A stretch of DNA of 61,681 bases, counting the filler, from Bipalium vagum (taxonomy: Eukaryota), in assembly GCA_037834085.1 (NCBI GenBank). It is 3 parts of 3 records of this genome, joined end to end, with 100 filler letters (N's around TTAATTAATTAA, not from the genome) between each part and the next. Parts side by side here need not be neighbours in the genome. Positions count along the whole stretch, not along the records: positions 27,421 to 45,536 come from JBBMKC010040427.1; 2 more parts are not named here. One strand, 5' to 3'. The notes below the pieces were generated by a model, which was not told the DNA's origin, searched no databases, and worked only from the letters and a program-made list of their open reading frames with translations. The translations under genes and the position numbers were made by a program. Positions 4,051-45,536 of the stretch are shown piece by piece; positions within the stretch are counted from its first letter, which is position 1; each line of letters begins with the position of its first letter.

Positions 4051-4540
4051 ATTAGGGGTATCCATAAGTTAACATATATATGGAATTTAAGTAATATTAA
4101 TATTAAAAAATTTGTATTTTGTTTAAGTAAGTCAATATTGATTATATTTATGGCATTAATTTGATAATTTATGTAAGTTTACCAAATTATTTTTAGAAAT
4201 TATAATGGAAAGTAGATAAAATGCAAATACAGCACTGCATGTTGTTTTTGTTTAATGAGAGCAAAACTAGAGCAGTAGACGAGAGTTCATGTCATCAATG
4301 GTTTGCACACTTTAAAAGAGATGATGTTGATTTGAACGATGAAGAACGCGTTGGGTGGTCACATGAGATGAGTTTTGGGGTGACCTGGAAGCACTTTCGA
4401 AAGAGGATTTAACTCAATCGAGTGTAGAATTGGCAAGAAGGTTACATGTTAACTAGAGCACCATAATTCGATGGTTATATCAGTTGAGAAAGATTCATAA
4501 AGAAGGAAAATGAGTTCCCCATGATTTATCCGAGAAGAAA
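4051..4540 (+). mobile_element. Truncated mariner relic (5' part of transposase)
   Basis: TIR-like attaggggtatccataag at 4051; HTH-region peptide CHQWFAHFKRDDVDLNDEERVG; decayed WVPHEL motif (EGK*VPHDLSE) near 4510. Confidence 0.75.
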
Positions 4541-7479
4541 TATAATAATACATGAAATTTCTTTAAAATAGTATAACCAATAATATAAAATACTTTTTGA
4601 GAATACTATTAAACTTAAATCAGTTTATAATGTAACTATATAATTCTACCTACCGGTTATTATTTCCGTGCATTCAGTACAAGAATAAATGTACAGGGAT
4701 TAATGAAGACCACTACAGCATCTATAATATAACAGATAGGAAATGACGCTGGTAACTCTATTTTCTTTTATTTTAAAATTATGAAAGTCACTATGCACTC
4801 AATATATTTATATTAAATATCTAGACCATTTCAAAAAAAATTTTGAAAAAAAAGAATGAAATAATTACCAACTATAATAGCAATCACCATAGAATTAAAA
4901 AAAGGAACAGCCTTTTTTATTTATGTTGATTTCGTAGTTTCCTGCCTTTACGTTTTAATAATTTTATCATTGTCAAAAGTACGTGGATAAAATGAAATCA
5001 ATATTGATTATTTAGGTATAAAATATATTTTTATCCATTTATTTAAACAAAAAATTATATGAATATAATTATTTATTACTTTTTATTTAGAAAAAACTAA
5101 TTTTATTTAGAGCAAGGTTCTGAAAAGACATTTAAATATTGTTCACAGTAATTGTATAAATAAAGATTCAGACAAAGAATATCAAAGATAATTATGACTT
5201 GATATATTATTCATGGATATCATCATCCCTGAATACGAATGAAAAATACCATTAAAACCGACATATATAAAACCGATCAATTTTGTCACACATCAAAAAT
5301 ATCAAAAATTGATAGTTATGAATAACGCATTATTTTTGTTATTACAAAGTAAAAAGAAAAAAAATAGTTTAACAATAAAATCATGACAATATTTAAAATA
5401 TCTATTTTTTATTTAATATCTAAAATATTTATTTATTATCATTTATATATATAAATATAATTTATATCATCGATATTTAATTTGTTAAAAAAACCATATT
5501 CTCATATAATAGTATGATATAATATCATATGATTAAACAACTGATATATGAGACAATAATTTTGACGAAAAATTTAAGAAAATTCTTTTATAAAATCGGA
5601 AAATTCAAATGTTTTAAATTAACATATTATATTTATCTTGTTTTAATAAATAAATTATTAAATCATTGATTTAAATTAATCAAGTTGAATAAAAATTAAT
5701 TGACAATTTTTAAATGTTATTTTTAGTTTTATTGATTATTAAATAATTTATTTCAATAAAATTTTCAGACAAAAGATAATGTTAAACCAGAATTTATGAA
5801 ATTTTCATTCACGAATTCATTGAAAAAGATCAATGTTACATACACATGAATAGTTTCAAATAAATGTACAAATGTATCAATTTATCTAAGAATAAAACAC
5901 TTTTAATTGCAAGCCGCAGAAAATTGGGAATCAAAGAAAAGAAAAAATAATTATATAATTATTCCCTTTTTTCTTGGAATGGTAGAAAAATATTTATCAT
6001 ATATATATTTCACATAATTAATTTTTGAATTAAAACAAAATTTAATTATTGTTCGATATTCAGAAAAAATAATAAGACAAAACCAAAAAATCCAACTTTT
6101 TTTTCTAGACAATTTTTAGAAGTTACTATACATTAATAAAATAAAATTATTTTATATTTTCATATTACATATATTATGTTATATTTTATTATAAAATATT
6201 AAAACATCAATTTATTTTATTCAGGTTCATGGGAAAAAAAGATAAATGAGTTTGGACAAATAATTAAATAGATTGTATTTAAAAATATTTGACTAATAAT
6301 ATTCATAAAAAATAAAATAAAAATTATGTAAATTTTATTTTTAATTATGGATTATTATAATAAATTGATATTAAGTTTTATTAAAAATATTTTTTGCTTT
6401 TTTATTTATTCACTGTACATTTATTAAATAATAAAAATAAAAAAAATAAAAAATAATAATACATTAAGATGTGTAATATATTTGTTCGAAAAAGAATTAT
6501 TGCTAAAATTCGTGAATAAAAATAAGTTCGATTTGATATTATATTTTATTTCGTTAAATATAAAGGTTAAATAATTCTTAATTACTAAAACATTAGTCTT
6601 CTTTCTCCAAAATTTGTCGGTTACCGAAAAATTGCTTTGAATTAAATCACCACAGAAAACATTGTTTTGAGCTGTTTTATGTAGGCAGCAATATTAATAA
6701 TGACTACGGATATTTAAAATCCGAAGAATGCTGTTCTATCAAAGTCGCTAATGGTTTCAAATTTTGAGTGTAAAATAAAGAATTTTTAGTAACAAAAATT
6801 ACGAATGAGAGTAACACTTAGCAGACTTATCAGGATTCTCTTAATAGGTAATATGATTAATAAATAATTAACATTTCCCTTAATAAAATATTAGGTTAGT
6901 GTGAAAGTAATGTCTCATTATATATAGAATTATTTTATAAAATTTCACAAACTGCAAAATTTTTTATATATTGCAATAATTTCTCTAATTATTCACGACC
7001 ATTAACCATGTTTCAGGTATTAAATTAATCCTCTTGAAAAAATCCTATCTTGACCTGAAACTTTCAAATAATACAATATCCGCATCCTGCTCCAACCTAA
7101 CTTATCCTTTAAAAATAAACATTCTACGATATTTTATACAGCTTTTTATTGTTTCTAACAAATTTTGTGTTAATATAGTCTTTCATTCTCAAATTCCTTG
7201 TCAACACCAATCAGACCATTATAAAATCTTACGAATCTCTATAGAGGGCACAAGAAAAGTTCTCGAAATTGTCTTGTCCTTTTAAAACGTCATATTTGAA
7301 AAAAGAAACACATATGATACTAATAAATATGAAATGTAACTTAATTGAAGCGCTATTTTATGGAGTTCAAATAAATGAAACTAATTTTACGATGATAACA
7401 TGACAATCATATAAATTATTCCATTTGCGATTCATAAAATAATTTCCTTTTTTATTAACATGATATAAACCAGATATAT

Positions 7480-7890
7480 AACGTCATATACAGAGGTACT
7501 TTAATCTTCTGAATCTGTATGGTTTGCAATTTTTACAAGAGATGACATTAACGATTTGATATGGCAGCACGATGATACATAACCGCACTTCCCATAAAAC
7601 TATAGCTTGATGTTTATTTCCCTTTATATGGATCGGACGACGGAGTCCAGTTGAGTGCCAACCACGCTTTCCGGACCTTAAACTCCAGATTTTTTTTTAT
7701 TTGTTATTTTGAAGAAAAATGTTTATGAAACCAAGCCAAAATAACATAAATTATCTGAAAACCTCAATTATTCAATCCTGTGCTAAAATAACTCCTGGTA
7801 TGTGCGTGAACGTTAGCATAAGTGTTCCATACAGAATTAGACGTTGCATCGGTGCTAATGAGGCTCAATTTGAGCACATTTTAATTAAAT
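7480..7890 (+). mobile_element. Tc1/mariner (rosa-like) transposase C-terminal relic
   Basis: Broken translation WQHDD..PHF, WIGRRSPVECQPRFPDL, KKNVYETKP, YRIRRCIGANEAQFEHIL matches the WIGRxxxxxWPPRSPDL and R..CI...G.HFEH pattern. Confidence 0.75.
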
Positions 7891-8814
7891 AAATGTTATT
7901 ATTCTGTTCTTATATATGATAACATGATAAGAACAAAAAAGAAGAACAAATGGATAAAAATAAAAGATAAAAGATCTTAAGAAAGAATTGTGGAAGACAG
8001 AATTTCAATATGGATGTGATTGGTAAAAGTTATTTTTATAAATGGCAAATAATTGGAATTCCTTGATAAATTTTATCAAAAAAAATATATCACGTCAATT
8101 ATCCCATTAATTAAGTTATTAAATTTATTTTCTTTTATTTAAAAAAGATTCATTTTATATTTTGTTTTTTGTTTAACATTCCATTATTTAAATTATAACT
8201 TGCCTTAGTGGATGAGCATTGGTTTATTCTAAAAAACCAACAAACCACATTTATGCTTAACACTACTGAAATTTCACAAATTATTATTTAATGTAACGTT
8301 ATTTAATAAAAATATAACTATTTTAATCAATATAAATTCAGAACAGTGACTATAGATTTCTGGTTTGAAATAAGCAGAAGACCAATACTTCTGTATAAAA
8401 ATAAAATAAAATTGAAATATTTTAATTATTATTTTTACATAATTGTTAAATTGAATCCAACTGGTGATAAACAGGGTTATTAATTTACATTCCTTTAATA
8501 ATAATTTGTTATCTATGGTTCATGTGCAAATGTTGATCTATCGCTGTATGAAACCAATAAAGTGATCTGAAAAATTAAGCAACAAAAATTGCAGTTTATA
8601 ATTTATATATGACCTGCATTGTTTTCATGTTACTAAAATAATTTTTGATGAAATATTTGTGACACTAGCGTTAATTAGTAGTATCAGTTAATGTTCACTA
8701 ATGAATTTATTTATTTTGGATCATAAATGTAGAGTACGTTAACTGATAGAAAGAACAAACAAATTATGAAGATAAAATCGTGTATTAGAGAAAATGAATT
8801 CATTATTTTTAACG

Positions 8815-9520
8815 TAGAGATCCAATTAAAAAAAATAAACATGGACAAATAATATAATAATATAATAATTGGCGGAACCTCCTTTAGTCTTGATAACTTC
8901 TGCAGGTCTTTCTGACACGGAACGGGTTAGATTAGGTAACCACTGTTTTGGGATCTGATTACATAAAGTTTTCACGATATATAGTCTCAATCGGTCTGTA
9001 TTATGCATGAAGGATTTCTTCAGCAATCCTTTCAGACCATAAATTTTCTATTGAATTTAAGTCTGACCAATGTGGAGAAAAGTCTAGCACATTCCATAAT
9101 TGAATCGAAATTCAATTTTTCATCCTTTGTCTTTTGTGACACAAAGCATCGCCATGAAGGAGAATCCATGAATCGACATTCTTAAAATACTGCTGCTGTA
9201 TCGATGATACTTGAACATTTCCAAATAAAAAATATCTTTTCTCCTACAATTAAACATCCTATCATTGTTATTTTTGGAGAACCCTTCACTTGACATGGCC
9301 ATACCAGATTCCGATCGATGAAATCTAACGACAAGTATTTAAAGGTATTAAATGTCTAAGTATCATCGTTACTGCATCATTGTTTTATTGAATAAGAATG
9401 AGGATTCGTGGATTCTTTTTCACGATCAGATCTCGTTGATGAAGGTAGTAAGCCATGACTCAGATTGTAAACGAAGTTTGATTACACAAACAAAACTCGA
9501 GTTTTAAATTTTTTAACAAA
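8815..9520 (-). mobile_element. Degenerate Tc1-like transposase relic
   Basis: C-terminal IPKQWLPNLTRSVSERPAEVIKTKGGSANYY resembles the Tc1 IP...NL..SMP.R..AVI.AKGG.TKY ending; many stops and frameshifts upstream. Confidence 0.7.
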
Positions 9521-11087
9521 ACAATATTATTTTGATTGTTTTAATCTTTGCAATAATACTTTCTAATAGATAAAAAGGAAAAAAATATAAATATAAATAT
9601 TATAAAAGTAATTATAAGAAAAAATTATTTTATAGTCGTGTATGGAAACCTATCGTCGTTTGATTAGAAGCTTTAAAAAGATAAAATCTTTTAAGACTAA
9701 AAGTGAAAAATAATAGAATTGTTTTTCATTATATTTTCATTAAAAGAAACCTTAGAAATTGATTTATTTGATTGAGTAATACATATTTAAATAATAATAT
9801 TTAATTATAATAATATCAGTAAATTTTTTTATTTCCGTTATGTCCATACTGAGCAAGAAGTGTTACTAAGTCCTTAAAAATCAGGTGGAAAAAATCACAT
9901 TATTCATTACAGAGTTAAATATTCAAAAAGAAAAAAACATTCATTATAAGAAATTTTAAGGGAAAAAATCACAAATCACAAACTAAAAAAATGTTAATCA
10001 ATTGAAAGCGGGCTTCAATGACTTATACTTTTTATTTCGCTAATTATTTTATTGATTTCAAATTAAAAATAAATAATGAATAATATCGATTAATTTATTA
10101 TTAATAATAATTTATTAATTTAATGATTTCTTGATATTAAAAATTGCACGACTTAAAAATTCCTAATAAAGTTATTTCATTAAATTTTTCTATTTAGGTC
10201 TCACAAATTGATTTTTTTATCATTGATATTTATTTTTTTATTTATTTCTTTTATGATAGAAAAATACGATTTAATTCCAGGCAAAAAACAATTGAGCTTA
10301 ACTGAATAATTTTCAAAAGGAGCAATTTGAAAAAGTAAACCAAAAATAAAAGAAAAAAAATTAATATTACTCCGAGATTTCAGAGAGTCTGGCTAACAAT
10401 TGATGGATTTAGTTTAAATATTTACAATTATGACGAATTGTTTTACGCTGAAGATGCAATGCTTTTCAACAAAACCGGGAGAGAAAAAGTTTCTGTGTGA
10501 TTTCTCTATCAATGGAAATTGAAAGAGAACAGATCAAATGAAATCAAACTGAAAAAGAGACAGAAAATGGCCGAACTAAAGCAGTAAGCATTGCTAAAAT
10601 ATGCCGTTCATAATGCTTAACAGTATTACTAGTCAATTTTTACACTAATTTTCCAAATAAGTTTCTCATCTAACACAATGAAATATTTGTAAAAAATAAA
10701 AATTAATAATAAATTTTCAAACCATTCACAAAATAATGACAATATTTTAATATGGATAAATATTTCCATCATTTACTGGAGATTAATTTCGACGTTATTT
10801 TTTCAGTTGAATTAAAAATGGTAAAATGTTTTTTTGGAAAAATAATTTTTAAATAATTATTATGATTAGAGTTTATATTTTATGTGACTTTATTTATCTG
10901 AATTTTCGTTATTATCAATTTTAAAATAAAAAGTTTAAAATACGCAGACTTTAATTTAATTTTTATAATATTTATTCTTGGAAAATTAAATTTGACTATT
11001 GTAAACATGAAACCGTTAATTTAGAAATGTCACATTTCTTTTTTTTCACAATTATCGAATCAAATTTTATTATAAAAAAATACTTAC

Positions 11088-27420: not shown

Positions 27421-29064
27421 AAATTTAGAAAATAGTAACATTAAGTTACTATAATTAAAAATATAATAAAATAAAATAATATAAATAATCAAATTAATTT
27501 GGTAACGGCAGAAGAAAAATAAACTCAGGACAGCAGGTGCAAAATATAGAAGAAAGGTGAAGTCTACAAAAGGAGAAAACCCACAGATTTCTGTCATAGA
27601 GCCCGCAGATTTCGAATATAGAAAAGTTCAACTACCAGCACAATGTTCAACATTTTCCATTAGCTACAAAGTTGCATTTCCTCAATCCAACAAGGACAGA
27701 ATACAAAATTAATGAAAAACTAAGGAGTCATTTTTACGAATAAAAGATAAGCAGTCAAGTTCCCGTGAAAACCAGGACGCAAGGATTCCGCTACACAATT
27801 TCATCAGTTATACTAAGTATTATTATTATTTGTGTAAAGATCAGTAGATTTAATTAGAAATCTAACTAAACTTTTGATTAATTAAAACATAATAATTATT
27901 TGTTTCACACTAGAAATAGGTGAAACGATTCCCAAATAAATCAAAACACTTAACTGTAATTTGAATCAAATTAGAAGTTAAAGGTTTACTAATTAAATAA
28001 AATAAATACTGTGGAGACTCCAAGATCAACAACAAAATCAACAATCCCAAGGATCCCACGGACAACAACCCCAACAACTGCAAAATCAAAGCCAACAAAG
28101 CGTGATCCAATGAAAATAATATTATAATACTTTTACATTATTATCCTTCGCTTAGTGATCCATTAACGATAATATGATCCTTTCTGTATGATATTTGATA
28201 AATCTGTAGAAATTTTTACTTATGGTGGCTTTATGCAAACTTTCGATGATCGTTCGTTTTTCGCCGTAATGTTTTTTTTGTAATCTTACCTTGAGCTCTG
28301 TTTAAAATGTTCCTATTGTAAATGACCACTTGAACCAAATGATTAAATGAAAATGTTTTACTGACCATATTGACAAAAATGTTTTGGAATTGCAAAAGTT
28401 TATTAATTCTTCAGACGTTCCACCTTCAACCGTAACTCATGAGGAAAATTAAAAAAGGCTAAACTTTATTGGACAGTCTTTTTTTATGCGGTAACATTGT
28501 GTTTGATTTATAGTGAGTGATGTTGCTGTTGTGGTCGTGCGACAGGTGTTGCAGAGACAACAACATTAATAACAGGCCTATTCCATTGGCTTTTAGTCAG
28601 ACAAGTGAGATGGAGAGAAGTCATATCAAGTCTGGAACAATTTTTTCCACTTTGGCTGAATAACGAAAATTTTTGAGGAAGAGAATTCAGGCCTGCCTGT
28701 GGGAGAAGGTTGGACAACGTTCGCTCTCTCCATTTCTTTCTTTATTGACTTTATTTTATGCTTTCTTTTTTCAAAAGAAGTAAGAATTTTTTATTCATAA
28801 TGATAATGAATATTTACTATAATAATAAATATAAATCATTGTCAGTTATATATCCTTTCGTCCAATATAGCAGCATTTCCAGTTAGTTTACATAACCTTG
28901 TTTTATTTAATGACATTTAACATTTTATTTTCTCTAAAATACTTAAGTGCAGAGTCATTTTTATGATGTCATTTTTTATTATTTAAACAAAATTTCAAAT
29001 TTTTTTTTGAATTTAACAGGTAATTTTAATTCAAAATTTTTTTTAAAAAGTGTTCAAATTTTAA

Positions 29065-29169
29065 AGTATACAGGTTTTCAATTAACACAGGTGACAATAC
29101 GGAATTAAATGTTCATATAAAAGAGGTGTTCAGCTAACAAAGGTGTTCATTTATGCAGGTTTCACTGTA
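29065..29169 (-). mobile_element. pogo/Tigger-like TIR end
   Basis: Minus strand reads TA|CAGTGAAACCTGCATAAATGAACACC, with repeated aggtgttca subterminal motifs; partner TIR not found. Confidence 0.5.
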
Positions 29170-29289
29170 ATAAAATCACTTTAAAGCCCTTAAATCAGTC
29201 AGAATCGATATCACATAATTGTCACTTTATTTTGACTAAAATAAAAGTATTTAAAAGTAAATTGTTTTCTCATTCATTTTAACAGAACA

Positions 29290-30945
29290 CATTTATAAGC
29301 AACCTTCAAACGTTAAGGCCTAAGTACCACAGTAAGCTCCATCTTTAACATCAGCTTATCCCATCTCTTAGGATCTTAACAGGTGGATGAGTCATGTGGG
29401 CCAAGTTCGGCTTTTGGGTTTCTCCTCAATGAATCTGCGATACAATAAAATCATGATTACCAATATACTGCCTACAACGCATTGGTTTTTCATGATTAAA
29501 GAACGGAGTAATAATTTAACGCTAATTTTCGTCCTATGAACATTGTGAAGGATAGAGACATCCACTGTAGGCTTTGCATAATTGTGGTAGAAACACAAGC
29601 TCACCCACACCAACCAACAGCGAAACACAATCACGTGTTAACGCTGTTGTATAACTTTCTGAGGGACTCGGAATTGGACCTAGATATGGATGTCCAGATT
29701 TAATTCTCAGATTCAAGGACAAGATAGTTATCAGTCTCATCGACCTCAAAGTGTCATATGATGAGCACAGTAAGTTCTCTGAAGGTCGTAAAAGAAACCA
29801 GAAGAAATATGAAGGACTCGCTCAGCAAATGGCACTTGCAACCCACAACAAAGTCAATATCCGGACTATTAATCTCGGGTGCCTGGGCTCCTGGGATTCC
29901 GAGAATGATAACGTGCTCCGCCGACTTGGGTTCAAGGAAATGAACATACTCAGATTATCAACCGATATGATTGCGTCCGTTACCAAATTTACATTTTTGA
30001 AAAAACTTTAAAAATTTCCCTTTTAAAAAATAAATAACCTTAAAAGAAAAATTTTAAAGAATCTTAAAATAAATTTTAAAAAATTTTATTAGGAATTTGT
30101 TTTGTTTTTGTTTGTTTTTATGGTTTTTTAATTTTAAAAATCTCTTTTTACTGAAACTATACTTTTTATTTTTTTATTTCATTGTTATTTTTATTGAAAT
30201 CATAAGTAATTTTATCTGTCTCTTTGATGTATATATTTAATCGTAATTCTATCCAGGGCTCAGGATGGGATTACATCGAGGACTGCTTAATGGCCCGAAG
30301 TAGTTTGACACCCAAGGTTCTTGGGTTGAGAGCAAAAAAGGCAATAAGTAACTCCCAATAATTGAATAAGGAATTGCATACTGACTCATTCGCTCATATA
30401 TACGGCGATATCCTGAATCAGTCAGACTGCAAGGCTCAAGACAGGATGGTGAGAAGGGTTAAAGCAGTGAGATGATAATTTTCTTTATATTTTTGTATTT
30501 ATTAGTTTATTTTGTAAAAAGTTTTATGGTGATGAGTCAATAAGGGTTTTAATGTATAATTTTCCTGGAGGGACTATTTATAAAACTTAAGACATAAAAA
30601 CACTTATTAGTTTATTTCGATAAACACACAAACAAGGTCTTATTTCTTTTTGTTGTAATGTGATATTGCTTATGACTTAGGGTATAGATTAATTTCGAAA
30701 CATCTGTTGGGATCTATAGAAAAAGAGGTCGTAAACAATTCGAAAACAGATCACAAAGGAACCGGAACCACAAAAAACCAAACAAGAGCTGATGGACAGT
30801 GATTCCCTACAGCTCATTATTGACATGTAACAATTGATTAATTTTTGTGAATTTGCATGAAAAATCCTTGTTAGGCTTACTCTCCTTTTATTATGGACTT
30901 ATTTATGTAATTTTATATGATATTTTATATTTTAGCAAAAATAAA
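29290..30945 (+). mobile_element. 5'-truncated RLE non-LTR retrotransposon (NeSL/Utopia/R5-like) with putative long 3' UTR
   Basis: Frameshifted peptide THWFFMIKERSNNL (cf. WRFIHRARLN), zinc knuckle CRLC...ETQAH, KHN (RHN), PD/IDLKV, QKKY and LGCLGSW...N..LRRLG; coding ends at 30011. The 3' boundary is uncertain and set at the AATAAA near 30940. Confidence 0.8.
30243..30432 (+). ncRNA. Candidate structured RNA element (four hairpins, possible kissing loop), probably the retrotransposon 3' UTR
   Basis: Stems 30243-54/30263-74, 30280-88/30298-306, 30310-16/30320-26 and 30374-91/30415-32; the G-U pairs in the first two stems form only on the plus strand; loops GGGCU and GGCCC are complementary. 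Confidence 0.5.
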
Positions 30946-33707
30946 AATATTTAAATTATAAATTTGTTTTTAATTAAAATATAATAATAATATAAATTGT
31001 TGGTTGAAGTTAATTAAAACGTAACCCAAAAAATTAATAAAAGATATTAAGATGAATAATCATCATGTAAAAAATAAGAAAATTTCTATAAATACATCAA
31101 TATGAATGAATATTAATATGTGGAGTGATATATTTAGTAAGTTCTATAATATAAGAACTTGTCTAAAATAGCAAAAACCCACATATTATTCTATTAACAG
31201 AAAGTTTTATTTTAAACTAATCAATAGATCAGTAATGTAAAAATCAGGAGTATATAAGCTCTTGGTTTTCGCATTAAATTCGCACTTAATTTCGTCTTAA
31301 CAAGTTACAGTCGGTAATAAATAAAGGTAAATAAAATACGCTTTTGCTATTTTAAAAATCGATCTCTTTTGAGTCAAATAAATTAATTAATTAATACTTG
31401 ACGAATGCAGAGCAAATACTCTGCTTATATATTATTTTCATTATAATTATATTTTCTTATTTCCGATTTTGTTCTCTTAGCAAATCGATTCTGTTTCGCT
31501 CTAGGCGACAGAATGCGTATTTTTGACATCAGTGCTTTTTCGGTTATCATAAAACCAAGAAGATATTAATTAATTAAATATCAGATATTATTGCTTAGAA
31601 GAGTTACTTGAAAATAGAAAAGTTGTTTTGAAAAAAATTTTTTGTAATAAAATCGTCAGTTGATTATAGTTAGATTTATTTCGTATTTTAGAGAACTTAT
31701 TTGTTACACTACCTTTGAAGGAATTGGTCAACTCATATCTAACCTATATTAATAGAGTTAGCATTTTATATTTTCAAGATTAACACTTACACATCTAATA
31801 GGTGATGGATTGAGGGAGTTATAAATAGTTCCCTCTAGACGCAGTTAAGATGATTTTTTTTTGCACAGCTGAAGATTGGAGAAGAACATCAAGTATTTTT
31901 TATGTTTTTAACCCCTCCCAATTTGCTGCCGATGACTGGCTAAAGAAAAAGAACTGACGAGTAATCTGATGAAGAAAACTGCCAAAGGATGGTTTTAAAA
32001 TCAAAAAACCGACGAATATGGTCAGAAAACGCTTTCATAAAATAAATGTTGCTTTTTTCTACTTATTTGACATAATGTATATTAAATATTTTTATAAACT
32101 TACTTATTAATGCTATCCAGTAGTTTTCAAAAGTTACTATCACGTACACAAATATAAAATTTATAGTTTGTCATATCAAGAGGTAAATTTTTTAATAATA
32201 ATATTTAAAAATAAAACTATAAATAAATGACTTTTACAAAATGATTTTATTAATGATTAAGAGTTAAATGAGATGAATTCAAGAATGTAAATTTTATTAT
32301 TTCATTGGGATAAAGTAAGTTTTTTATTTTTACGTAATAATAAACGAGTCATGACAATAAGCAGGGTGATATATTATTTAAAATTTGATCGATTGATATC
32401 TGTTTTATTGTATCCACTGATAGATGTATCTTATTCTGATTGTCATAATAATGAATGTTTACGTTGTCCAAACTAATTTTTGTTACACCAATAGTCAGAG
32501 TCAGATCAAAACGTGTGGTATGGTATCAACTTAAAAATTCAGGAATTTAAAAAAGCTAACGAGTTTGTAATTTTTATATTTCAACTACCCTAAAATTCCT
32601 TAGATAAGAGCGGTTTAATTTTTAAAGATTTTGGTCAATAATTTCAGATTGATTGCATGATAGAAAATATTTCAATTGTTTATAAAACCAAAGAAAACAA
32701 CTACAAAAGTAACAATAATTTAATTTTATTTCAAATTTGTACATAATCATCATCGGTTATATCCATACTGGAAAAATCGTTTTAAAAATTTTTTTAAAGT
32801 ATATATTTTTCGCCTTAAAATTCTCTATTTATCCCTGTTTGTTTTATGTAGTGCTATAAGCGTATAAATCTTATGGAGTCAAATTTATATTACCAGAGTC
32901 GATTAGGAAGATAAACTCTCAGTCGACGGTTGTGTATTTAAATATATTTTCCGGTAAGATACAGGGTTTCTATCGGTTGCGATAAGAATTAAAGTTGAGA
33001 GTCTGACACACCTAGATTTTGTCAATTATTTCCTTGAATCTCATGGAAATTTCAACAGAATGCAATTCAAAATTTACAGGATATAAGTCACTGTTCATAT
33101 TTTTTCTATTTTCATTGACTACAGCATTCTTCCCACGGAAAAATGTTTTATTTAAATGAAGGTCCCCGTACTCACTTGATTAAAATTTTTCAAATAAATG
33201 CAAAATTATGTTTTCAGATGGAATTTTAAAAATTTTCTTGTACACGCCACAAGATTTGAATAAAAATGAAAAATAACATTGATTGAAAGTATTGATGAAA
33301 TTTTTTTGTCAAAAAATGATTTTTTGTTCTCAAAAAATAAATTACCAAAACAATTAAAATAGAAATATTTTTAAGATTTAATATTTGTAAATTTACGGAT
33401 ATAACGATTTCAATTTGAGAACAGCGTAAATTTTGTTGCTTCAAATTAGTAAAAATTTCTAAAATATAAATTGCTTTAATTTTCAGGAAAAAACCGTTTC
33501 ACTGTCAAATTTAATTAGATCATTAAAAAACTCCATTAATAATTAATATTTAAAATGAAGTTAAAATTCCTTGTTTAACTGGTTAAATATAATTGGTTAA
33601 TCTTTATTTTCCATTTTAAAACCGAATGAATTTTGTTGTTGAAAATTTTATTTAGTGAGCACTATCGATTGATAAATATTGAATTTTTCCAGGCCATTAA
33701 ACAAAAA

Positions 33708-36416
33708 ATGAATAGAAATTTCATTTCGATTATCGTAATATTGATTTTATGTGTCAGCAGTGAAAGTAAAGGTCAAAAACCAATAATCAAAGAACACCCA
33801 TTGAATGCGTACGGATTGAGCTTGCAGCGTGTCAATTTGCGTTGTCTAGCCTCCGGTAATCCCCCACCCAGTTATGTATGGTACAAAGCAGGAAAAATCG
33901 TTGAAAGTTATAAAGACAAGCCCGTTACGTCGAATCGAATTGCGAAAGATAACGAACTGCTCTTTTTTCATTTGGACACACAAGATGAGGACGTTTATTA
34001 TTGCAACGCTTCCAATGTTCATGGATGGACGATTTCCAATAACGCCAGCGTAAGAGTGGCGTTTCTCAACAAAGACATAATTGGACCGGAGCCCAAGACG
34101 GCCAGCGTGGGCGAGACAGTGCTGATGGAGTGCAAGCAGCCTAAAGGAGTGCCGAAACCGTCTATTATTTGGAAGTTCAACGGCAACGTTATCGAACTGA
34201 ACAAACGCGTTAGGGTTTTGGATACGGGGGATTTGCGGATCGACAAAGCCAGCAGAAAGGACAGCGGTCGATATAATTGTATTGCCAAGAACTTTGCCTT
34301 CGAGCGAGAGTCAACATCCGCCCTGCTGACCGTGCGTCAGAAACCTTTCTTCAAAATAGCTCCCAGCAACATCGAGGTCAAGGTCAATGAAGCGGCGATT
34401 TTCCCCTGCCTGGTCGACGGCGATCCTAAACCGACCATCAACTGGCGCCGGGACAACAACAAGCCAATTCCGAGCTCGCGCGCAACTCTTATGCATGACA
34501 ACGGAATGCGAATTGATAAGGTCCAACTGACGGACAGCGGCAGTTACATTTGCCAGGCAACCAACTCGGCCGGCGTTATTGAGGCCTATGCAAAGCTCAA
34601 CGTCGTGTCGCCACCGGGGTTTATCGAGACACCCGACAATCAGAAAGCCAATATCGGAGATTCCGTTCGTTTCGCATGTCGTGTCACCGGATCGCCGACA
34701 CCGAGCATCCTTTGGATTCATAACGGAGATCATTTCATTGGCAGCGATGAGGAAATGTCGCCTAATGTCGGAGGGGATTCCGGGGGTCGCGTTTCTGGGA
34801 GTGGTGCCAGAATTAGGGTTTCAAAAGACGGAAGCCTATCGATCAATCCAGTAAAGATTTCCGATTCGGGTAAATATGAATGCAAAGCCTCCTCGTACAT
34901 GGGTAAAGTTCAAAGTTCGGCTTTCCTGGAAGTTGTCGACGATTTTTCTCGACTTTATTTGCCACCCGTTATTGAGTTCGGACCGCAAAATCAGACTTTG
35001 ACAACAGGGCTCACCGCGACGTTTAATTGCGTTCCGAAACGATCAAAGAATGAAGATGAACAGGTCGTTTTCAATGACAGCAGTCAGCGCGACAACGGTG
35101 CCGTTCGTATAACATGGTTGCGAAACGGACAGAAGTTGACTGGAATTTCCGATCCTCGCATCATTCAAATGACCTCTGGAACGACTATCAAAATCAACTT
35201 GCTCCATCCCGGTGATGCTGGTAATTACACTTGTCGAGTCGATCGAGAAAACGGAGCATCTTACACGATGTGGACAGCGCAGCTGCGCATTTTGCCGTTA
35301 GACAAGAACGATTTCCGCAATTCCATTCAACAGACGACAAATGATATTCGAATGTTTCCGGCGCCGGCGACCAATTTTGAAGTAGTAGAACGGGGAGATT
35401 CGTGGATTGCTTTCAAATGGGATGCTCCGTCGTTTTCACCATCGTCTTCTTCATCCTCGTCTTCTAATGATGATTCCCCTATTAATGGTGCCAGTGGAGT
35501 GATTGGCTATTATCTGATTGAATATTCGCCATACGAATCGCGACAAGGTTGGTACATGCACCAGGTAATGATGTCATCACCGGGTAAGGTTACCAATCTT
35601 CATCCGAATACGGGATATCGATTCCTGATCCGATCAGTCAATGATATTGGGATCGGTCGTCCAAGTGTGATTCCATTTGTCGTCTTCACAACGAAAAAAT
35701 CAACTTCGTCTGTTGCTAATTTCGATTACAATGAACTAAAGTCGAAAATCGATAATGTCATCTGTGATGGTTTGAGAATGAAAAGCGTGTCTACAGATCA
35801 ATTGACGATCATTTGGAACGTTATCGGACCCGTCCAAGCCTTGAAACTATTATCTGGGTTCATGAGCAAATTTAAAAAGGTTCCGCTTGGTCGCTGTTTG
35901 GCCAATAACTTCAATCACAATAGCAACAACAAAGCCAGTGGGTTAGGAACGGGGGTGAACAGTGTTTTCATGGAACATTGCAGCTTGTCTGACAATTCTT
36001 TGCATCAGATTGAGACCGATATATCGAATGATCCAAAATCGATTTTCAATGAAGAAGGACCGGATCAAATTAAGTTGGTACCACCGGGTGGCTCGATGGA
36101 ACGGAACGATCACAGCGTTGCATATACGATTATTTCGAATTTGGAACCGTTCTCGTGTTACGAGGTCTACGTTCAACCATATTTGGACTATCCAAAGTTT
36201 GGTAGAATGACCGGCGTTGCCAGCAAGCCGATAACGATTCTCACTTATGATTCCGTGCCGACAATGGCACCAACCGATCTTACTGCTCGTTGGTTGTCCA
36301 ACACTTCCGTGGAGATCAAATGGAAACCGGCTCCAAAACGCTTTGTCAACGGAATTTTAAAGGGATATTCCATTCACATTATTGGCAACGACACCAACAC
36401 TACCAGATCAATAGAG
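33708..36416 (+). CDS. robo: Roundabout receptor, coding exon 1 (signal peptide, Ig1-5, FN3-1, FN3-2 and most of FN3-3)
   Basis: Signal peptide MNRNFISIIVILILCVSS; five I-set Ig domains (e.g. DEDVYYC, DSGRYNC, DSGSYIC, DSGKYEC, DAGNYTC); Robo-type PPVIEFGPQNQTL Ig5 start; FN3 motifs; phase-0 donor GAG|GTGAGA. Confidence 0.93.
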
Positions 36417-39400
36417 GTGAGAACGGAAAATTTTCATTCATCTATCAGATATAATAATAATAATAATACAAATAAAAATAACTGATCAGCTTTACTAAGA
36501 AAAATCAGTTAAAATATTTTATTAATTATTGATTTACATTCAATAATATTTTTATTGATAATTTAGTTTGATTAATTATAATTTTAAATTTTTAAAATCA
36601 ATTTAATGTATAATCTTAATTAATTTTTAAAGTAAAAACAGACCCAGTTCTTTTAAATAAAAAAATAATATTTTACATTAAAATATAAAATAATTATTAA
36701 AAAAAATATTTCCATATACTTCAATCACAAAGATATTTGCTGGGCTTTTTCTGTGGCTGGGAAATATTATTTTCGACTGGGCAACCAACCCCTTCCCCGA
36801 TTTCACCCTCCCTCAAAAAGTCATTATTGATTTTTATTCCTGTGCTACCAAATCTAAACTGTCAATGAGATTATGCGAAAATTTTCCTTTCATTATTTTA
36901 CGTTTTGCAATCATCTTGAACAAAAAAACCCAAGTTTTTGTGCTGGCCCAAAATGATGATTTTATTGTGGTTTTTGTCATTGCGTGAAAGGGCTGAGCTA
37001 AGCGGAACACTTTCACAATCTTCATGACAATATCCAGATTCGTTTATCGGACGGCGAAAGATGGTGATAAAGTTCACAAATTGTGCCGCTGTAGTTGATT
37101 CTTGATCATAGTGAAGTCACAGAGGTGGTCTGGTCATGCAACGAAATTTCCTTCGCCGTGGATGGGGAAACGGTGGATTCCCTTCCACCAGTTCCCCGAA
37201 TTAATTAGCCTAATAAAATTTCTTTAATCATGTCCAATGTTTTGGCACCTCTCGCTCTAAGAAGGATTCCTTTGGTATATTTTCATTCAGATTCTCCAAT
37301 CCAATTCCGTCTTTTTTTATTTTTTAATCAAGTGGTGGAGAAAATAATATTCACCGAATCATTTGTGTCACTTTTTTTTCATTAAATTTGTAATTATTAT
37401 TCAATTTCAGTGAGCTTCCAACATCCTTTAGAGGGACACTTGATCGAAAAATTTTCCATTAAAAATAATCTCATTCCATTAAATTTAAAATTGTCCATTT
37501 GATAACATCAAGGAAGACATTTTCAAATCAATATTGATTGAAATTTAAATAAAATATTATTGATTTATTACAATATAAAAATATAAATATATATTGATTT
37601 TTAATTTATAATAATAATAAAATTATTATTATTACTATTAAAAATTATTATTTGATCATAAATGTTCTCAGTCTCCTAAAAGAAATGAAAAAAAAATCTC
37701 CGTTTACTGGTACTCCTTCCATTAATGACATAACACTGTCCCACCAGGTCATCTCTGTTTTATCAGTGACGTAACTGTCCATGATTCTGAGTAAATAAAT
37801 CTCTGATGATGCTGGTACTGATGCTGGTTTTCGTGCCTGTTTTATTGGAATTGGTGACGTTTTTCTCTCTTAAATATCTTATTCATTCAAAACACGAACT
37901 GATACGAATGTAAACAAAATCGAAAAATTGGCAAATATTTACACTGGGAAGGCTGTTGAGAAACAGAAGTGTTGGAAGGAGAACTCTGAGATAAGTGTTT
38001 CAATGAGAATTGTAATGTTTTTGGTGGGCAAATGAATTGGGAAAGAAGTCGTTTTCGAGGAGGAGTTCATTATTTCTCTTTCGTGCGGCCCCTCTATCAT
38101 ACCCCAATGAAGATGACACGGTTTCCGTCTTAGCAATCATTAACCGCCACCACTTTAACAATAGCAATAACTGTCGCAGGCGCCGACGTCGTAAAAGGTA
38201 TAATCAAAAACAAAGGAAAGAATATTGCTACTTGAGACTGAGAATTCTTTTTGCTAATAATTATTATGATAATTATTATTACTACTTTTAATTGCGGTAA
38301 AAGTATTAATAATTATAATTATTAGGAAAATGGATATGAGTCATATTAAAATATTAATACTACTACTAATATTATTAATAAATGATAATAATCATAATAA
38401 ATAAATAAAAATAATAGTAATAAAGCAATGATAATAAAGTAATAATAGTAACAGCATGTAGGGCAAGCCAAAATACGGCTGAATCTACTGTTAGAAAATA
38501 TGGATTTCAGGGAATTGTCTTGTGCCATTGTATTTTCTGCTATTCATGCTCTTTCCCGGCCTCGTTCGACTTTGGTACATGCAAACACCATTTATTACAA
38601 TTATTATGATATTATAGTTTTATGACAAATTACATTCAACATTTCTCTTTTTCTCTATTTTCGTTACCATGGCCACGATATTTGCGAAGGTGACTATGCA
38701 GTCGACTCACTTGAATCGTGATGACGGCAACAATGATTCTCACTCGCAGTAATAATATTGATAATTAGTAATAATTATATATTTTATATTTTTAGCAATT
38801 ATTATTAATTCCTGGATTTCTTTTCCCTCTCCATATACATGTAGTATTAATAGTAAATTCCTTATTTAAACTTTTTTAAAATTATTTTTAAAGTAATTTA
38901 TTTGCAAATAATCGATTTTCAATTTCATTATCCAATATTATCCAATAGAAGGATATCCTTCATTTAATTGATTGAACAAATATTATATAATAATAATTGA
39001 TTCATTTTGATATTATTATACTTGAGATCGATTGCGTAAATGTTACCAGTAAAAATTACTGTTTCTACCATGTTAATTTTAATTATTTTAATGGAATTTT
39101 TGGAAAACTGTTGACTGTGGAGAAAAATTGTTCTCCGTTTAAAATTGCCATTGTTTTAATAACTGTGAGAATTGTGAACAATCGATATCTGCCTTTCCAC
39201 CAAGGAAATAGCTTTACTCCTTTCATAGAAGACGTCAGACCATATTAGCAGTCTTGGAATTAATAGCAATAATGAAAATAATAATAATAATAAATAATTA
39301 ATTAATTGATGATAATAAGTCTAAGCAATATTTCATGGGATTATTTCATGTTTCAGAATTTCAGTGTAGACCATTATTTCGATAGCTAAGCATTTTGTAA

Positions 39401-39960
39401 TGTATTATTATATTTAATAATAATAATAACGATAATTAATATTATTCAGTGTAATTAACAGAATACAGTTTGCTCCTCGACTGGAAAAAATAATAAAAAG
39501 ACTAAAAATTAGTATAGTAAATATTAATAAGACTACTAATGAAAAAGACCTCTGTTTAAATAATCATTATTTTGAGAAGGAAATATTCCCCTCGTCAATG
39601 ACCTAGTTCATAGAGTACCATTTGCTTTTGATTGTTTCTTTTTACTTATTTTATTTGTCACCGACGTTTGATTCCTTTTGGTAATCAATAAACCTGTTCC
39701 TATGATCTGCCACTACCTTCTCGTTGCCCTTATCAAACATCTGGATGTCTGTACACTTGAAATCCCAACATATTTCATGTTATTTTCCGACTACAAATTT
39801 GGTCTCATTTCCGTTTAGTAACATTTCCGGAGTACGTACTTTTAGGAATATCAATTATATAATTCATTTGATTTATATTATTATTATTATTATTAATAAT
39901 ACTAATATTATGATATTTTTTTAAAAATAATGATTTTTCTTCCAATTTGTTCAAATTCAG

Positions 39961-40669
39961 GTAAATCCGAAACGAACGTCCATGCAAGTACAAGATCTGA
40001 TCCTGAATATGCCGTACGTTGTGCACATTGCTGCTGTCACTTGTCAGGGTGAGGGTATCCGATCAGCAGGGCTACTGTTAACGGCCTCATCATCGATCAT
40101 GACAATGAGCCCGATACTGATCGATAAAAAGTTTGCCAGTGCTCATAGTGACAAATCGGTACAGGCTTCCGTAACGAAGCAGCCTTGGTTTATCGCCATC
40201 GTAATTATTGGCACTTGTCTGTGGTTTATGATCTGTGGTTTCATTTTGGTTGTTTGTCGAAATATGTACTTGCGCGGTCTGATTTACAAGTCGGGTTACT
40301 CGAATGGAACAAAGCTCATTTCAAACAATGCAAACGGCCAGCCTCCTGACAGATCATGTAACAATCGTTTGACGGCCAGCGATCATCAATCAGCTTCTGT
40401 TGTCTATAGCAATTGTAACAGTCACAACACGAACAGCGCAAACTCGAGTGGGGCCGCAGTTGTCTACAGAGATTCCATTAGTCTTCAACCGCTCATAGCT
40501 GCCCCGGCAAATGCCAGCAGTAACAAGGAATATAAATCAAACACAACTACAGTAACAGACACTGCCACCAATTCTTCTTCAATGCTCAGTCCCATTATTC
40601 CCAGAAATAATCCAAGAAAATTCCAAGACTCCAGTTCGGGGAGTAACAGTACATGCAAAACTTCAAATA
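39961..40669 (+). CDS. robo: Roundabout coding exon 2 (end of FN3-3, transmembrane helix, start of cytoplasmic tail)
   Basis: Acceptor ttcag| in frame with exon 1; YVVHIAAVTCQGEGIRS completes FN3; Robo-type QPWFIA before the TM; phase-1 donor A|GTTAGT. Confidence 0.9.
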
Positions 40670-40674
40670 GTTAG

Positions 40675-40677
<3 letters not shown>

Positions 40678-40718
<41 letters not shown>
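40678..40718. repeat. (ATT)n microsatellite just after the exon 2 donor
   Basis: Perfect triplet run. Confidence 0.9.
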
Positions 40719-43700
40719 TAGAATAATAACGATCATAATAGTAATAGTAATAATAATTATATAATATAATTTTTATTGATTTTTTATTTATATTTTTATG
40801 ACTAAATATTATTATTATTTCAATTAAAAAGAATAATAATTATTAAATAAAAAAATAATAATACCTGAAAGCTGTTCCAATCCATGTAATATTAATCAAT
40901 ACAAAAGTACTGTCTCAAAAAACAAACAGAAATCTTTTCTCAGTACATTTCGATTTTAATTTTGAAAAAATCGATTTTGGCCGAGTGATCTGAGAAAGCA
41001 GTGCTGACGAATCCATTGGCATAGGGAGTAGTGGGAACTTTTAGCAGAGTGCCCGTAAAAAGGAAGTGACAATTTTGGTATTGTCAAGCCCGGCCCTGGG
41101 TCGATATTTTGACAATTTTTCTCCAACGTCCCGAAAGATTATCGACGTTTATTGTTGAATTTCAATGTTTACTGATGCTGGTGCTGTTGCTGGAATGTCA
41201 AATACATATCTCCGTGCTGGTGAGATAGGACGGACACTGTAGACGATTTCCCATAAATTATTACACTCCTGGCCTTTTATCTTGTCTTGTTTTGGTGATG
41301 ATTGACCGACCGACATGGAAATGAATTTCCTAAGATTTTTGCTGGGATCTCTTCTTTTATCAGCGATCAATATCTGATAAGCTCTTGTCCCTTTTTTCTA
41401 ATTATCTGAACTAATTTTTGAAGAAATATCTGAATTCATTAATGAAATATAAATCATTTTAATATTATCAGCACATTAATTATTATTTTTAGGAATATCA
41501 TAAAAATGTAATTATAATTATGGGGAGTTTAACAGGTCGTGGATATTTCTGATTTCCAATAATTATAAATAAAATGGTAATTAAATAACCTTAAAAATCA
41601 GAATAAATACTTAAAAATGAAGTTAAAATCATAAATTTTTAATTTATTTATAATAATAAAGAATTTTAATTAAATCAATATTTAGATAATTGAATTTTAT
41701 ATTTAAACTTAATCAATAAATAAAGAATAAAATTCCCATGGTGTGGTAATTAAAATATTTCCAAGCTTCAGATTTGGAACGGCATAAAAACTAATAAATT
41801 TATGGTCAAAAAACCTTTGGTAACATGACAAGAACCATCATTTTTTTATTTTTCTTAATAATTTAGTTAATTATTATAAATAAATAATCATTAAACGAAA
41901 TTAATATTGCCATAATATTACTAATAACGTTTACATATTACTAGTAATATATTAATTCTAATTCGTAATAAGTGTAAGAGATTTATATAATAATTTAATA
42001 ATTAAAAAAAACTTTTTAAATCTTTGTTTTTTAATTTTTTAATTTAAAAATAATTAGAAATAATATTATAAACATAAAGGCATTATAAAATAATATTTAT
42101 CATTTAAACTATTATAATAAAATATTTATTATATTATAAATTAAATAATTGATTTTATTTTTTTATTTATTAAATAAAAATAACTAACAAAATATTTTAA
42201 ATAATTAGATTTATTATTTTAATCAATTATAAATTATGCTGTAATATTAGAAGGGTTTCACTTAAGAAAAAGTTGACAGGGTTAATATTATTTCATTAAT
42301 TAAATGAATGTAATTTCATTTTTTAAAAGTTAATTAATAATTAATTAATTTTTATTTATTTCAATTAATAATTGATTTTTTTATTAATATTAACTCATGT
42401 TAATTAATATTAATTTTATTTTATCGGAAATTTTTCCACTTTATTTTTCCTGGCCGTTTCTTGTAAATTTCCGTTTCTCATGGGTTTTTGCGGAACTTGA
42501 TTTCCTGTCGCCCGATAATTGTTTTCCACAACCTTTACCGAAATCCTTTCCCACATTCTCCGTCAATTAACTCTCTGCTGGTTTTTCCACCTGTGTCGTC
42601 TGTGCTTCGTGATAGGGCTCATGTTTCATCGTTGTTTACATTAACTCGTTCAATAATAATGTGATTCAATCCCGTCAGAGACTGACGGGAAAAAATATTA
42701 TTTACATTTCCTTCACGTCGTATTTTCCATGGCAAAAAACTAATGTAATCCAAGACCAAAGAGATGCACACCAGTGGTACACAAATCACGTCCGATTGAT
42801 ATCTGCTCTTGTCACTAAAGAATTTTGCGTCGACAAAACACACCAAACGCCGTAACACTCACCAGCACGTTCCGGGACTCGTCAACTCGGGAAATGACGG
42901 CAATCATAATAACAAGCTTTGACATCTCTCTCTTTATACTAGCACTATTGGCTTTCTTTCATTCATTCATTGATTTTAGCACCGCAATTGAGCAGCGTAA
43001 CTTTAGCCATCATGAGATGGCACATCCTCGCACCGGTGATCACTCTCGATACCACCGGTCACTATCGTTTTACCAAATTGTTCAATGTCGTACGTGTTGC
43101 AACGTGCTGTGTTGACTGTCACGTAACTCCTGGTCGATTATCATTAATTGCTATATAAACATATTCATATCGATTTTCACCATTCTCTTCTCTGTCTGCT
43201 CTGTGTCTAAGTATGACGTCGATGGTCGTGGTGGTAGTAGTACCAGCAGTATAATTGATCTAGAAAATTTACGACTCTCGTCTGGCTTGATAGCGGTGAT
43301 GGTCGCTTTTTCTTGAACAATGGTCTCTCCGGATATCTGGCTGTGGTGTGGAGCAGGTGACCTTTATGGCAGCTTTGTCTGCTTAATGGTTCTAATCCGT
43401 TCCTGAAGTCCATTAATGAAAGCCATCGGTCTTATCGAGAGCAATAAAATAGTGTATTGATATCAAATTGGTAATGTGTCTCGCTGGAAACCATTAGGCC
43501 AAGCACTGTCACAGGCACACAAGAACATAAGAACTGCGCTCAGTTTGTTCTCAAGACCCTTGAAAGCAGAAATGAACGCGCTGAAATTATATTTTAAAAA
43601 TTTATTATATTTTTTACATAATATTTATAAATAAATATTAATGGTAAAATCAAAGTTTAAATCATTATTGTTCTTATTACATATTAAAAAGAGAAGGAAT

Positions 43701-43842
43701 ACAAATAGTTTTCTCCGACGATTTTCTCAAAATTACTAAAAATATAAAATATTATTATTATTAGATATAAAATATTTCATAATTAATAAAAAATGTGCAC
43801 AATAAATAATAATAATTACCCTGTAAAAATTAACCGAAACAG

Positions 43843-44052
43843 TCGTCAATATTCCCTCCAACAACGTGGAACCTTATGCAAGCACCTCTTTGCTCCATCA
43901 AGTCATTGGCAGTGGAGCTATGAACAATCACAGCAGCCCCGTCTCCTACCCCGTCCACAATAATTATCTCGTGCAGTTCTCAGACTCCAGCGCCATGGAC
44001 AACAGTTCCAGCTCTCAGAATAACTCGACGAATTGGTCACTTAACACTCCAA
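43843..44052 (+). CDS. robo: Roundabout coding exon 3 (CC1 motif)
   Basis: Acceptor aacag| is phase-compatible with exon 2; EPYASTSLL matches Robo CC1 (PYATTxL); probable donor A|GTTGGT at 44053. Confidence 0.8.
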
Positions 44053-45536
44053 GTTGGTCTTATTTTTTCGAAAAAAATATTTATAAAAATTACATTTTAT
44101 TTTTATTTATTCAATATTTTATTATTATTATTATTATTATTATCGATTATTGATTATTGATTATTAAATTTTTTATGAGAATTTAGGGAAGACGATTTTA
44201 TACTTTCTTCGCAATATTTTTAAAATTTGAGTGATCAGATATAATAGTTATTTATTTTCATTGAATTATTATTATTTTTTGTTCACAGGGTTTTTAATTT
44301 AAATAGATTTTCTTTTAATTTAAAATTGAATTAATTTTAATTGATTTTCTTTTAATTTATTGGTGATAATTTTGTTGTGTTGTCTCCTCCAACCTTAGCA
44401 CTCCTCTCTTCTCTACGGTATTCCTTATAGAAACGTTGAATACTTCTGCAGTGCTCTATCGTGTATCTTTCTCACTTTCAAGGGTCATTTCTCATTATGA
44501 AAATATTTTATATTCCCTCTTTTGTTTACACTACCTGACATACGATCTAAAACCATGCAAAGATGATATGAAAAATGTCAGTGTAAATATATATAAACAT
44601 GGAAATCATCAAATTAATGATAAATGAAAATCAATGAAAAATCGAAATCCTTAAACAAATAATCGATTTGAATTAAAGTTAAATCTTCCCCAGTTAAAGC
44701 AAATCTTTTTAGACCAAAACCCCTTCATAAAGCACGAGGATGTGTACTTAAAGATGTTACAGATTATTTTTGACCTCATTAATAATATTTATATTATTTT
44801 ATTTTGCTTAATTTATTATTTAATTTACTTTTCAAATATTATGGCCTTGTTTAACAATAATAATATTTTTACTTATAATTTGTTGGTGATGCCACAGGTA
44901 TTATTTGTTGTTTTAAAATTTTTCTGTTATCCCTTACGAAATGTAATGAGAGAGAGTTATTGATTTCTTTCACAATTACCAAGGAGAAACTTTCGAACAC
45001 ATATGAATATTGTGAGTTACCCCGGTGTCCGTGACATCCCCTGCATTTCCTTTGCCAAATATTGATCTAAAAGACCTGCCAGAAATGAAGTCACATTGAG
45101 AAATGAAATCCATTTCCAACAAAATTAATCTTCTCTCAATTATTATTGTTGTTGGCAGTCGTTGACTGCTTGTTACGATTCATTAGCGATTGATGTGGCT
45201 CCATTTCCGACCTCTTTCCAGGTGTCCCCTCCCTCTTTCATGTTGGCTTCTCCTCCATGCTCAAAGGATAACAAATCCCCGTGACCTGAATGACCACGGT
45301 TCCATTCCTTTAAAATGTTGCCTATTACACAATAAAATCATTAATTTTACTTTTTTTTACTATATATCAGATATTTATTAATATTTTCAATAGTTATTAT
45401 CTTCCCTCATTTATTAAATTTTTATATATTTCGTAATTTAATAATTTAACATTTTCCTTTTTTATCGATTTTTTTAAAATCATTATTAAAAAATATAGAA
45501 ATTTTTCTAAAATTTTTTAAAGATTTATATTGATTT

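Follow-up and report, generated by a model that had tools for sequence, protein, structure and literature searches.

In a 61,681-nt window of Bipalium vagum DNA (three parts of assembly GCA_037834085.1 joined end to end), we found that two adjacent hairpins follow a decayed C-terminal fragment of a restriction-like-endonuclease (RLE) non-LTR retrotransposon ORF on the same strand of one part (record JBBMKC010040427.1, positions 27421–45536 of the window, hereafter the piece). On balance, we think that the hairpins belong to the 3′ UTR of a 5′-truncated, mutated and dead copy of an R2/NeSL/Utopia-group RLE retrotransposon, in which the domain that they open would most likely be an RT recognition signal. 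Overall, we regard the locus as an ordinary retrotransposon tail with RNA structure.

According to this reading, the 3′ end of the element's sense RNA would be formed by a structured domain of ~233 nt (30243–30475) that holds hairpin 1, two further stem-loops, and either hairpin 2 as a local fold or a long-range closing helix in its place. The domain headed by hairpin 1 would be the cis signal that lets the RT pick its own RNA for target-primed reverse transcription, a role that we propose by comparison with R2, in which the protein positions the template by binding to stem-loops in the 3′ UTR of its own RNA. The 3′ UTR reading does without a kissing contact between the two hairpin loops, which an earlier description of this DNA (the initial annotation) had proposed and which finds no support. 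The features are collected in Table 1.

Table 1. Positions in the window of the RLE remnant, the island downstream of it and the predicted folds.
Feature	Position	Strand	Description	Evidence
RLE ORF C-terminal remnant, decayed	29524–30011	+		Translations, phmmer, tblastn, alignment A1
Zinc-knuckle region	~29524–29691	+	One reading frame	
PD..D.K endonuclease domain	29694–30008	+	Different frame from zinc knuckle	
RLE ORF stop codon	30009–30011	+		Translation
AT-rich spacer	30012–30242	+	Stop codon to island; length differs among copies	
GC-richer structured island	30243–30475	+	233 nt	MFE, depth, homology edge
Hairpin 1	30243–30274	+	Stem GUAAUUCUAUCC/GGAUGGGAUUAC, 12 bp including 2 G-U; loop AGGGCUCA, 8 nt	
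Hairpin 2	30280–30306	+	Stem GGACUGCUU/AAGUAGUUU, 9 bp including 3 G-U; loop AAUGGCCCG, 9 nt	
Closing helix, 5′ strand	30282–30296	+	ACUGCUU 30282–30288 and UGGCCC 30291–30296	Predicted
Closing helix, 3′ strand	30456–30468	+	GGGUUA 30456–30461 and AAGCAGU 30462–30468	Predicted
Hairpin 3	30310–30326	+	ACCCAAG/CUUGGGU, 7 bp	Predicted fold
Hairpin 4	30374–30432	+	Long interrupted stem: UUGCA, CUGACU, AUUCG, AUAU and partners	Predicted fold

An RLE retrotransposon remnant lies upstream of the hairpins

The hairpins start 232 nt downstream of the end of an RLE ORF whose remnant is split over two frames with stops and contains the motifs PDLILRF..IDLKVSYD..KKY..LGCLGSWD. The initial annotation had related the hairpins to RLE retrotransposons, and the decayed RLE C-terminus directly upstream on the same strand bears this out. 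When we searched 1.84 billion representative proteins with phmmer/HMMER, we found 68 matches (best E 2e-18, identity 28–48%), which fall at the very C-terminal end of proteins of ~1060–1140 aa, with the identity spanning only ~90 residues. In alignment A1, D15, D30, K32, N48 and Y52 are invariant and GxLGxW is kept. With the RLE fragment as query, a word-indexed search of proteins returned no match, the database evidently being without the contigs of this organism.

With tblastn and 18 full-length relatives as queries, matches were confined to 29524–29993, and RT homology upstream of the endonuclease was found nowhere in 27421–29523. Since no RT remnant precedes the endonuclease and the frames are broken, this copy is 5′-truncated and dead. 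One relative (P0018) has a clear N-terminal Peptidase_C48 (Ulp1) domain, then RVT_1, with the RLE match at the C-terminal end; another (P0008) has RVT_1 in the middle of the protein and RLE at the C-terminus, with a C48 match just below the Pfam cutoff. Judged by these domain matches, the nearest full-length relatives appear to be Ulp1-RT-RLE proteins with a NeSL/Utopia-like layout, and we assign the remnant provisionally to the R2/NeSL/Utopia group. Directly past the stop codon, the minus strand has a further hairpin (30011–30055), which is AT-rich, is 18 bp long and includes G-U pairs.

Both hairpins are present on the sense strand and exceed chance only weakly

The initial annotation described two adjacent hairpins, of 12 bp with two G-U pairs and of 9 bp with three, and we found its coordinates, stems and loops to be correct throughout. 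The hinge AUCGA (5 nt) separates the hairpins; together they contain 21 pairs, 16 of them Watson-Crick and five G-U, with no mismatches. When the 64-mer 30243–30306 is folded in isolation with RNAfold, its plus strand adopts exactly these two hairpins at –22.4 kcal/mol (z –2.99). This energy was not matched by any of 200 shuffles. The minus strand of the 64-mer has a z of +0.16 and is no better than shuffles; the strand asymmetry of folding is real.

We scanned the piece in 64-nt windows at 32-nt steps on both strands, with 40 dinucleotide shuffles for each window. A z of –3 or lower was found in 24 of 1128 windows (2.1%) and a z of –4 or lower in seven; because about 2% of windows reach a z near –3, the score of the 64-mer is not rare within the piece. 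In raw folding energy, the 64-mer comes about 15th among 4514. The lowest energies of any 64-nt fold in the piece (–26 kcal/mol) occur at 37133–37200 and 42997–43070, mostly on the minus strand, where the sequence is GC-richer. We also counted stems that run uninterrupted for 12 bp or more, with G-U pairs permitted and a loop of 3–12 nt, and found seven in the piece as compared to 4.2 expected from composition-matched shuffles (shuffle maximum 8); hairpin 1 is the most GC-rich of the seven. The initial annotation had read the G-U pairs as a sign of selection on RNA folding. The bias itself holds, as all five non-Watson-Crick pairs are G-U on the plus strand, and a two-sided binomial value of ~0.06 for 5-to-0 makes the step to selection suggestive only. 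The hairpin pair is thus beyond chance only weakly.

These numbers bear on a different explanation, to which we give clearly less weight and which is still the closest competitor: that the sense-strand hairpins of this tail have no role of their own and are inverted repeats that a decaying copy contains by chance. With the same limited probability, such fortuitous hairpins would have been singled out here as the most GC-rich ones in an AT-rich stretch. The frequency of windows with z of –3 or lower and the seven long stems where 4.2 are expected agree with this explanation; the five non-Watson-Crick pairs that are all G-U on the sense strand of the ORF speak against it.

In a longer context, hairpin 1 is predicted to be retained and hairpin 2 to be replaced

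We used partition-function folding of eight sequence contexts to obtain pair probabilities. Hairpin 1 has a mean pair probability of 0.86–1.00 across all eight contexts, a stability that counts against hairpins of no role. For hairpin 2, the mean pair probability falls from 0.90 in the isolated 64-mer to 0.70 in 30200–30400 and 0.21 in 30230–30340, and it is 0.00–0.01 in every context that contains 30456–30468. With these positions present, hairpin 2 is predicted to be lost, as its arm and loop find their partners there: ACUGCUU is predicted to pair with AAGCAGU, and UGGCCC with GGGUUA, in a closing helix that takes up most of the hairpin 2 loop. This helix is predicted to bound a multi-branched domain that encloses hairpins 3 and 4. 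Hairpin 3 has a probability of 0.93–0.96 in contexts that extend to at least 30400 and of 0.49 in 30230–30340. The folding models therefore present hairpin 2 as a local alternative fold only and, of the two hairpins, hairpin 1 alone as a robust fold.

The whole island (30243–30475) has an MFE of –69.1 kcal/mol on the plus strand (z –2.77) and of –58.5 kcal/mol on the minus strand (z –2.53). As with the 64-mer, folding thus favours the sense strand of the ORF, in support of the 3′ UTR reading; that the minus strand of the island likewise exceeds shuffles in structure counts against this reading.

Private letters make the studied copy look more structured than its family

To describe how other copies differ from this one, we used contigs of one public sequencing run and considered the best-supported 40 of 259 differences, each of which is borne by 11–18 contigs. 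The letter G30256, in loop 1, is private to the studied copy; the other copies have C in 462 of their 514 depth units (~90%; 14 contigs). C30283 reads U in 271 of 310 depth units of other copies (~87%), which gives a fourth G-U pair in hairpin 2. T30321 is A in most copies, and with A hairpin 3 drops to 5 bp and an A-A mismatch. When ten majority letters were placed in silico into the non-coding 233-nt island, for energy evaluation only, the energy of the 64-mer was –20.1 kcal/mol as compared to –22.4 kcal/mol in the studied copy.

All three private letters (G30256, C30283 and T30321) make the studied copy appear more structured than the family majority, a bias that is expected when structure is read off a single sequence. 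This inflation is a further point in favour of hairpins without a role. Pointing the other way, if weakly, the stem of hairpin 1 has none of the best-supported 40 of 259 differences as a majority difference in its 24 positions, where about one would be expected.

The island is multi-copy and is joined to the RLE ORF in a second contig

Contigs that match the window perfectly give a single-copy reference depth of ~20–25. Summed contig depth is 420–455 over the hairpins and 664 over 30407–30473 (range 420–660 across the island), corresponding to ~20–30 copy-equivalents of the island at an identity of at least 80%. The last ~70 nt of the island are more widely shared than the hairpin part. Over the RLE ORF, summed depth is 1400–7500, which is 5–10 times that of the island, so that most ORF copies within 80% identity are without the island tail.

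Two contigs define how the island is placed. A 258-nt contig is 83% identical to 30245–30473 and then diverges from the window, which puts the 3′ edge of the repeat near 30473. A 461-nt contig from another copy is 85% identical over 29707–29973 and is then joined to 30408 onward; the end of the ORF and the island are thus linked twice independently. In this second contig, the hairpin part (29974–30407) is missing or, judged by the length of the contig, is replaced by at most ~134 nt, and its apparent absence from another copy again fits hairpins that do nothing of their own. The spacer varies as well, in that other contigs skip 30042–30163 or have gaps. Within the piece, we found no second copy of the hairpin stretch, and exact-pattern scans of metagenome, viral and prokaryotic genome contigs for further copies gave no match. 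The contigs of relatives (L001–L005), including the 3′ flanks of the nearest ones (L003–L005), have no DNA similarity to the studied tail. On the whole, we take the island to be, most likely, the domain that ends the 3′ UTR in one subfamily.

It is improbable, in our estimate, that the island instead lies outside the retrotransposon, either as an unrelated adjoining repeat or as the multi-copy target of a site-specific NeSL/Utopia-like element; the element would then end, on the same low estimate, in the A-rich stretch just past the stop codon. In the NeSL/Utopia group, RLE elements typically insert at specific targets, and their 3′ UTRs adjoin truncated target genes (PMC4640811). An island outside the element would agree with this, with the sharp fall in depth right after the stop codon (from ~1400 to ~200, with a minimum at 30005–30138), with an island depth 5–10 times below that of the ORF, and with the A-rich sequence at 30012–30090. 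However, the second contig joins the ORF end to 30408 in the same order and orientation, and the depth of ~400 begins at ~30139, already within the AT-rich spacer, and not at the edge of the island. No known RNA gene was matched, and the genome is AT-rich throughout, so that an A-rich stretch is a weak sign of a tail. At the 3′ edge of the island itself, we found no poly(A), microsatellite tail or known target gene in the sequence or in the Rfam scans.

Known RNA classes and the proposed kissing loops

We ran Rfam cmscan at E ≤ 10 on 27421–45536 and then, with laxer filters, on 30150–30560, and found no family at 30243–30475 beyond noise (RUF1, E 4.9, on the minus strand at the island; mir-4899, E 1.1, elsewhere). 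The initial annotation had matched the hairpins to no known ribozyme class. Rfam contains an R2 3′ UTR family, and an R2 3′ UTR RNA element recognizable by covariance model was rejected on the scans at E ≤ 10, which were without a match at the island. Self-cleaving ribozymes (hammerhead, HDV-like, twister and others) were likewise rejected, with no Rfam match and no CUGANGA on either strand of 30150–30560, and the suggestion of an undescribed ribozyme thus finds neither a ribozyme-family match nor a hammerhead core behind it. ARAGORN predicted no gene in 27421–45536, which sets aside a tRNA gene or a tRNA-derived SINE. Short ORFs across the island, including one of 45 aa, have no Pfam match, and we take the island to be non-coding. 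Terminator-like or unusual promoter-like sites were looked for and none were found. The mir-4899 match is weak, far under the gathering score, and coincides with a near-perfect palindrome on the plus strand at 42656–42705 (CCCGUCAGA..ACUGACGGG).

The two loops were proposed to kiss because they are complementary. In the studied copy, GGGCU of loop 1 (30256–30260) and GGCCC of loop 2 (30292–30296) can form a run of five pairs at –9.4 kcal/mol. A run of at least five is found in 6% of shuffled loop versions and in ~10% of random loops with the composition of the island, and the duplex energy is matched by 0.1% of such random loops; the energy is rarer than the run length because both loops are GC-rich. 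With the C that most copies carry at 30256, the run is 4 bp at –5.8 kcal/mol, and a length of 4 bp is found in 27–32% of random loop pairs. Thus, with the family majority letter, loop-loop complementarity is at chance level and the proposed contact is not supported. Most of the hairpin 2 loop is predicted to be bound in the closing helix, so that the proposed kissing partner would be occupied elsewhere; hairpin 2 itself is out-competed by the long-range helix in the folding predictions.

We therefore regard a kissing-loop tertiary module, acting as an RNP signal or as a new self-cleaving ribozyme, as very unlikely: the energy of its five consecutive pairs, its stems of similar length with a short hinge and the pseudoknotted 3′ UTR elements known in R2Tg (PMC12222951) would fit it, but the majority C reduces the pairing to chance level, hairpin 2 and its loop pair elsewhere with a predicted probability of ~1 in the whole domain, the Rfam and CUGANGA searches gave no ribozyme, and in a dead copy private letters are not under selection. 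It is just as unlikely, on present evidence, that the RT signal of the NeSL/Utopia-like family is a two-hairpin loop-loop module where its 3′ UTR domain begins, with GGGCU (loop 1) and GGGUU (30456–30460) alternating on GGCCC as a conformational switch. In the literature that we searched, we found no kissing-loop signal in the 3′ UTR of a non-LTR retrotransposon.

Comparison with known elements

In R2, the 3′ UTR RNA is bound by the RT for target-primed reverse transcription (PMC11194090, PMC12222951, PMC10499050). The R2Bm protein depends on a core of two stem-loops with a single-stranded hinge, within a 3′ RNA of ~250–280 nt (PMC11194090), and the R2Tg protein (zebra finch) binds a structured, pseudoknotted 3′ UTR element of 67 nt (PMC12222951). 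The studied tail resembles R2, with its Bombyx helices H1/H4 and hinge, in that a single-ORF RLE element has a structured 3′-terminal RNA of ~230–280 nt, and in the succession of a first stem-loop, a short single-stranded hinge and then further stem-loops. Unlike R2, the island has neither sequence nor covariance-model similarity to the R2 element and no rDNA flank, the ORF remnant lies nearer to NeSL/Utopia-like proteins with Ulp1, and the hairpins are at the 5′ edge of the domain and not at its 3′ terminus. For sense-strand RNA structure within what is most likely a 3′ UTR, an RNP recognition signal is a reasonable candidate for the functional class of the hairpins.

The Ulp1-RT-RLE layout has been reported for the nematode NeSL and for Utopia-1_TSP (PMC4640811). 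As in these elements, the zinc knuckle and the PD..D.K endonuclease of the remnant align with proteins that combine an Ulp1-like protease, RT and RLE. In contrast to NeSL/Utopia, the studied copy is without the N-terminal and RT parts, its identity is only 28–48% over ~90 residues, and the Rfam scans found no spliced-leader or U2 snRNA target beside it. Among the relatives, L003 and L005 (with proteins P0008 and P0070) have a common conserved hairpin immediately 3′ of the stop codon. The AT-rich Logan contig with P0018 (L004:4250–4436) ends in a (CUA)n microsatellite 170 nt past the stop codon. This ending resembles those of microsatellite-associated RLE elements.

In stringent LINEs such as zebrafish LINE-2, a 3′ UTR stem-loop specifies which RNA is copied by the protein of the element (as cited in PMC11194090). 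Hairpin 1 could, by analogy, act as such a recognition stem-loop; unlike the studied element, stringent LINEs carry AP-type endonucleases and have their signal adjoining the 3′ tail.

Surroundings in the same record

Very high-copy repeats are found at 29000–29200 and 30809–31000, with summed depths of 50,000–98,000 and 5,000–10,000, respectively, as compared to ~20–25 for single-copy sequence. Three contigs join ~29169 to ~30925–30972, so that 29170–30966 would be one inserted block; the joint at ~29169 may be spurious, as only 20–22 nt fit on its shorter side and these are AT-rich.

On the same strand as the RLE fragment and 3.3 kb downstream of it, there is an uninterrupted ORF of 950 aa (33633–36485) with five Ig domains (I-set/Ig_3) and one fibronectin type III domain. 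In the Atlas search, the clusters closest to it were contactin, neurofascin, neuroglian and DCC, which shows a contactin/neuroglian-like metazoan protein, and its GC content is ~50% as compared to a background of ~27%. Presumably, this ORF represents one large exon of a cell-adhesion gene of the host. Another ORF on the plus strand (39982–40674) encodes 230 aa from an ATG, has no Pfam match and has (ATT)n microsatellites on its flanks.

Implications

The value of the locus is mainly for annotation: it contains a dead fragment with a predicted structure and places an RLE 3′ end 3.3 kb upstream of the presumed Ig/FN3 exon. If the domain is the recognition signal of a NeSL/Utopia-like element, it would be one more example of how RLE retrotransposons select their own RNA, a question of current interest because work is under way to adapt R2 proteins to gene insertion.
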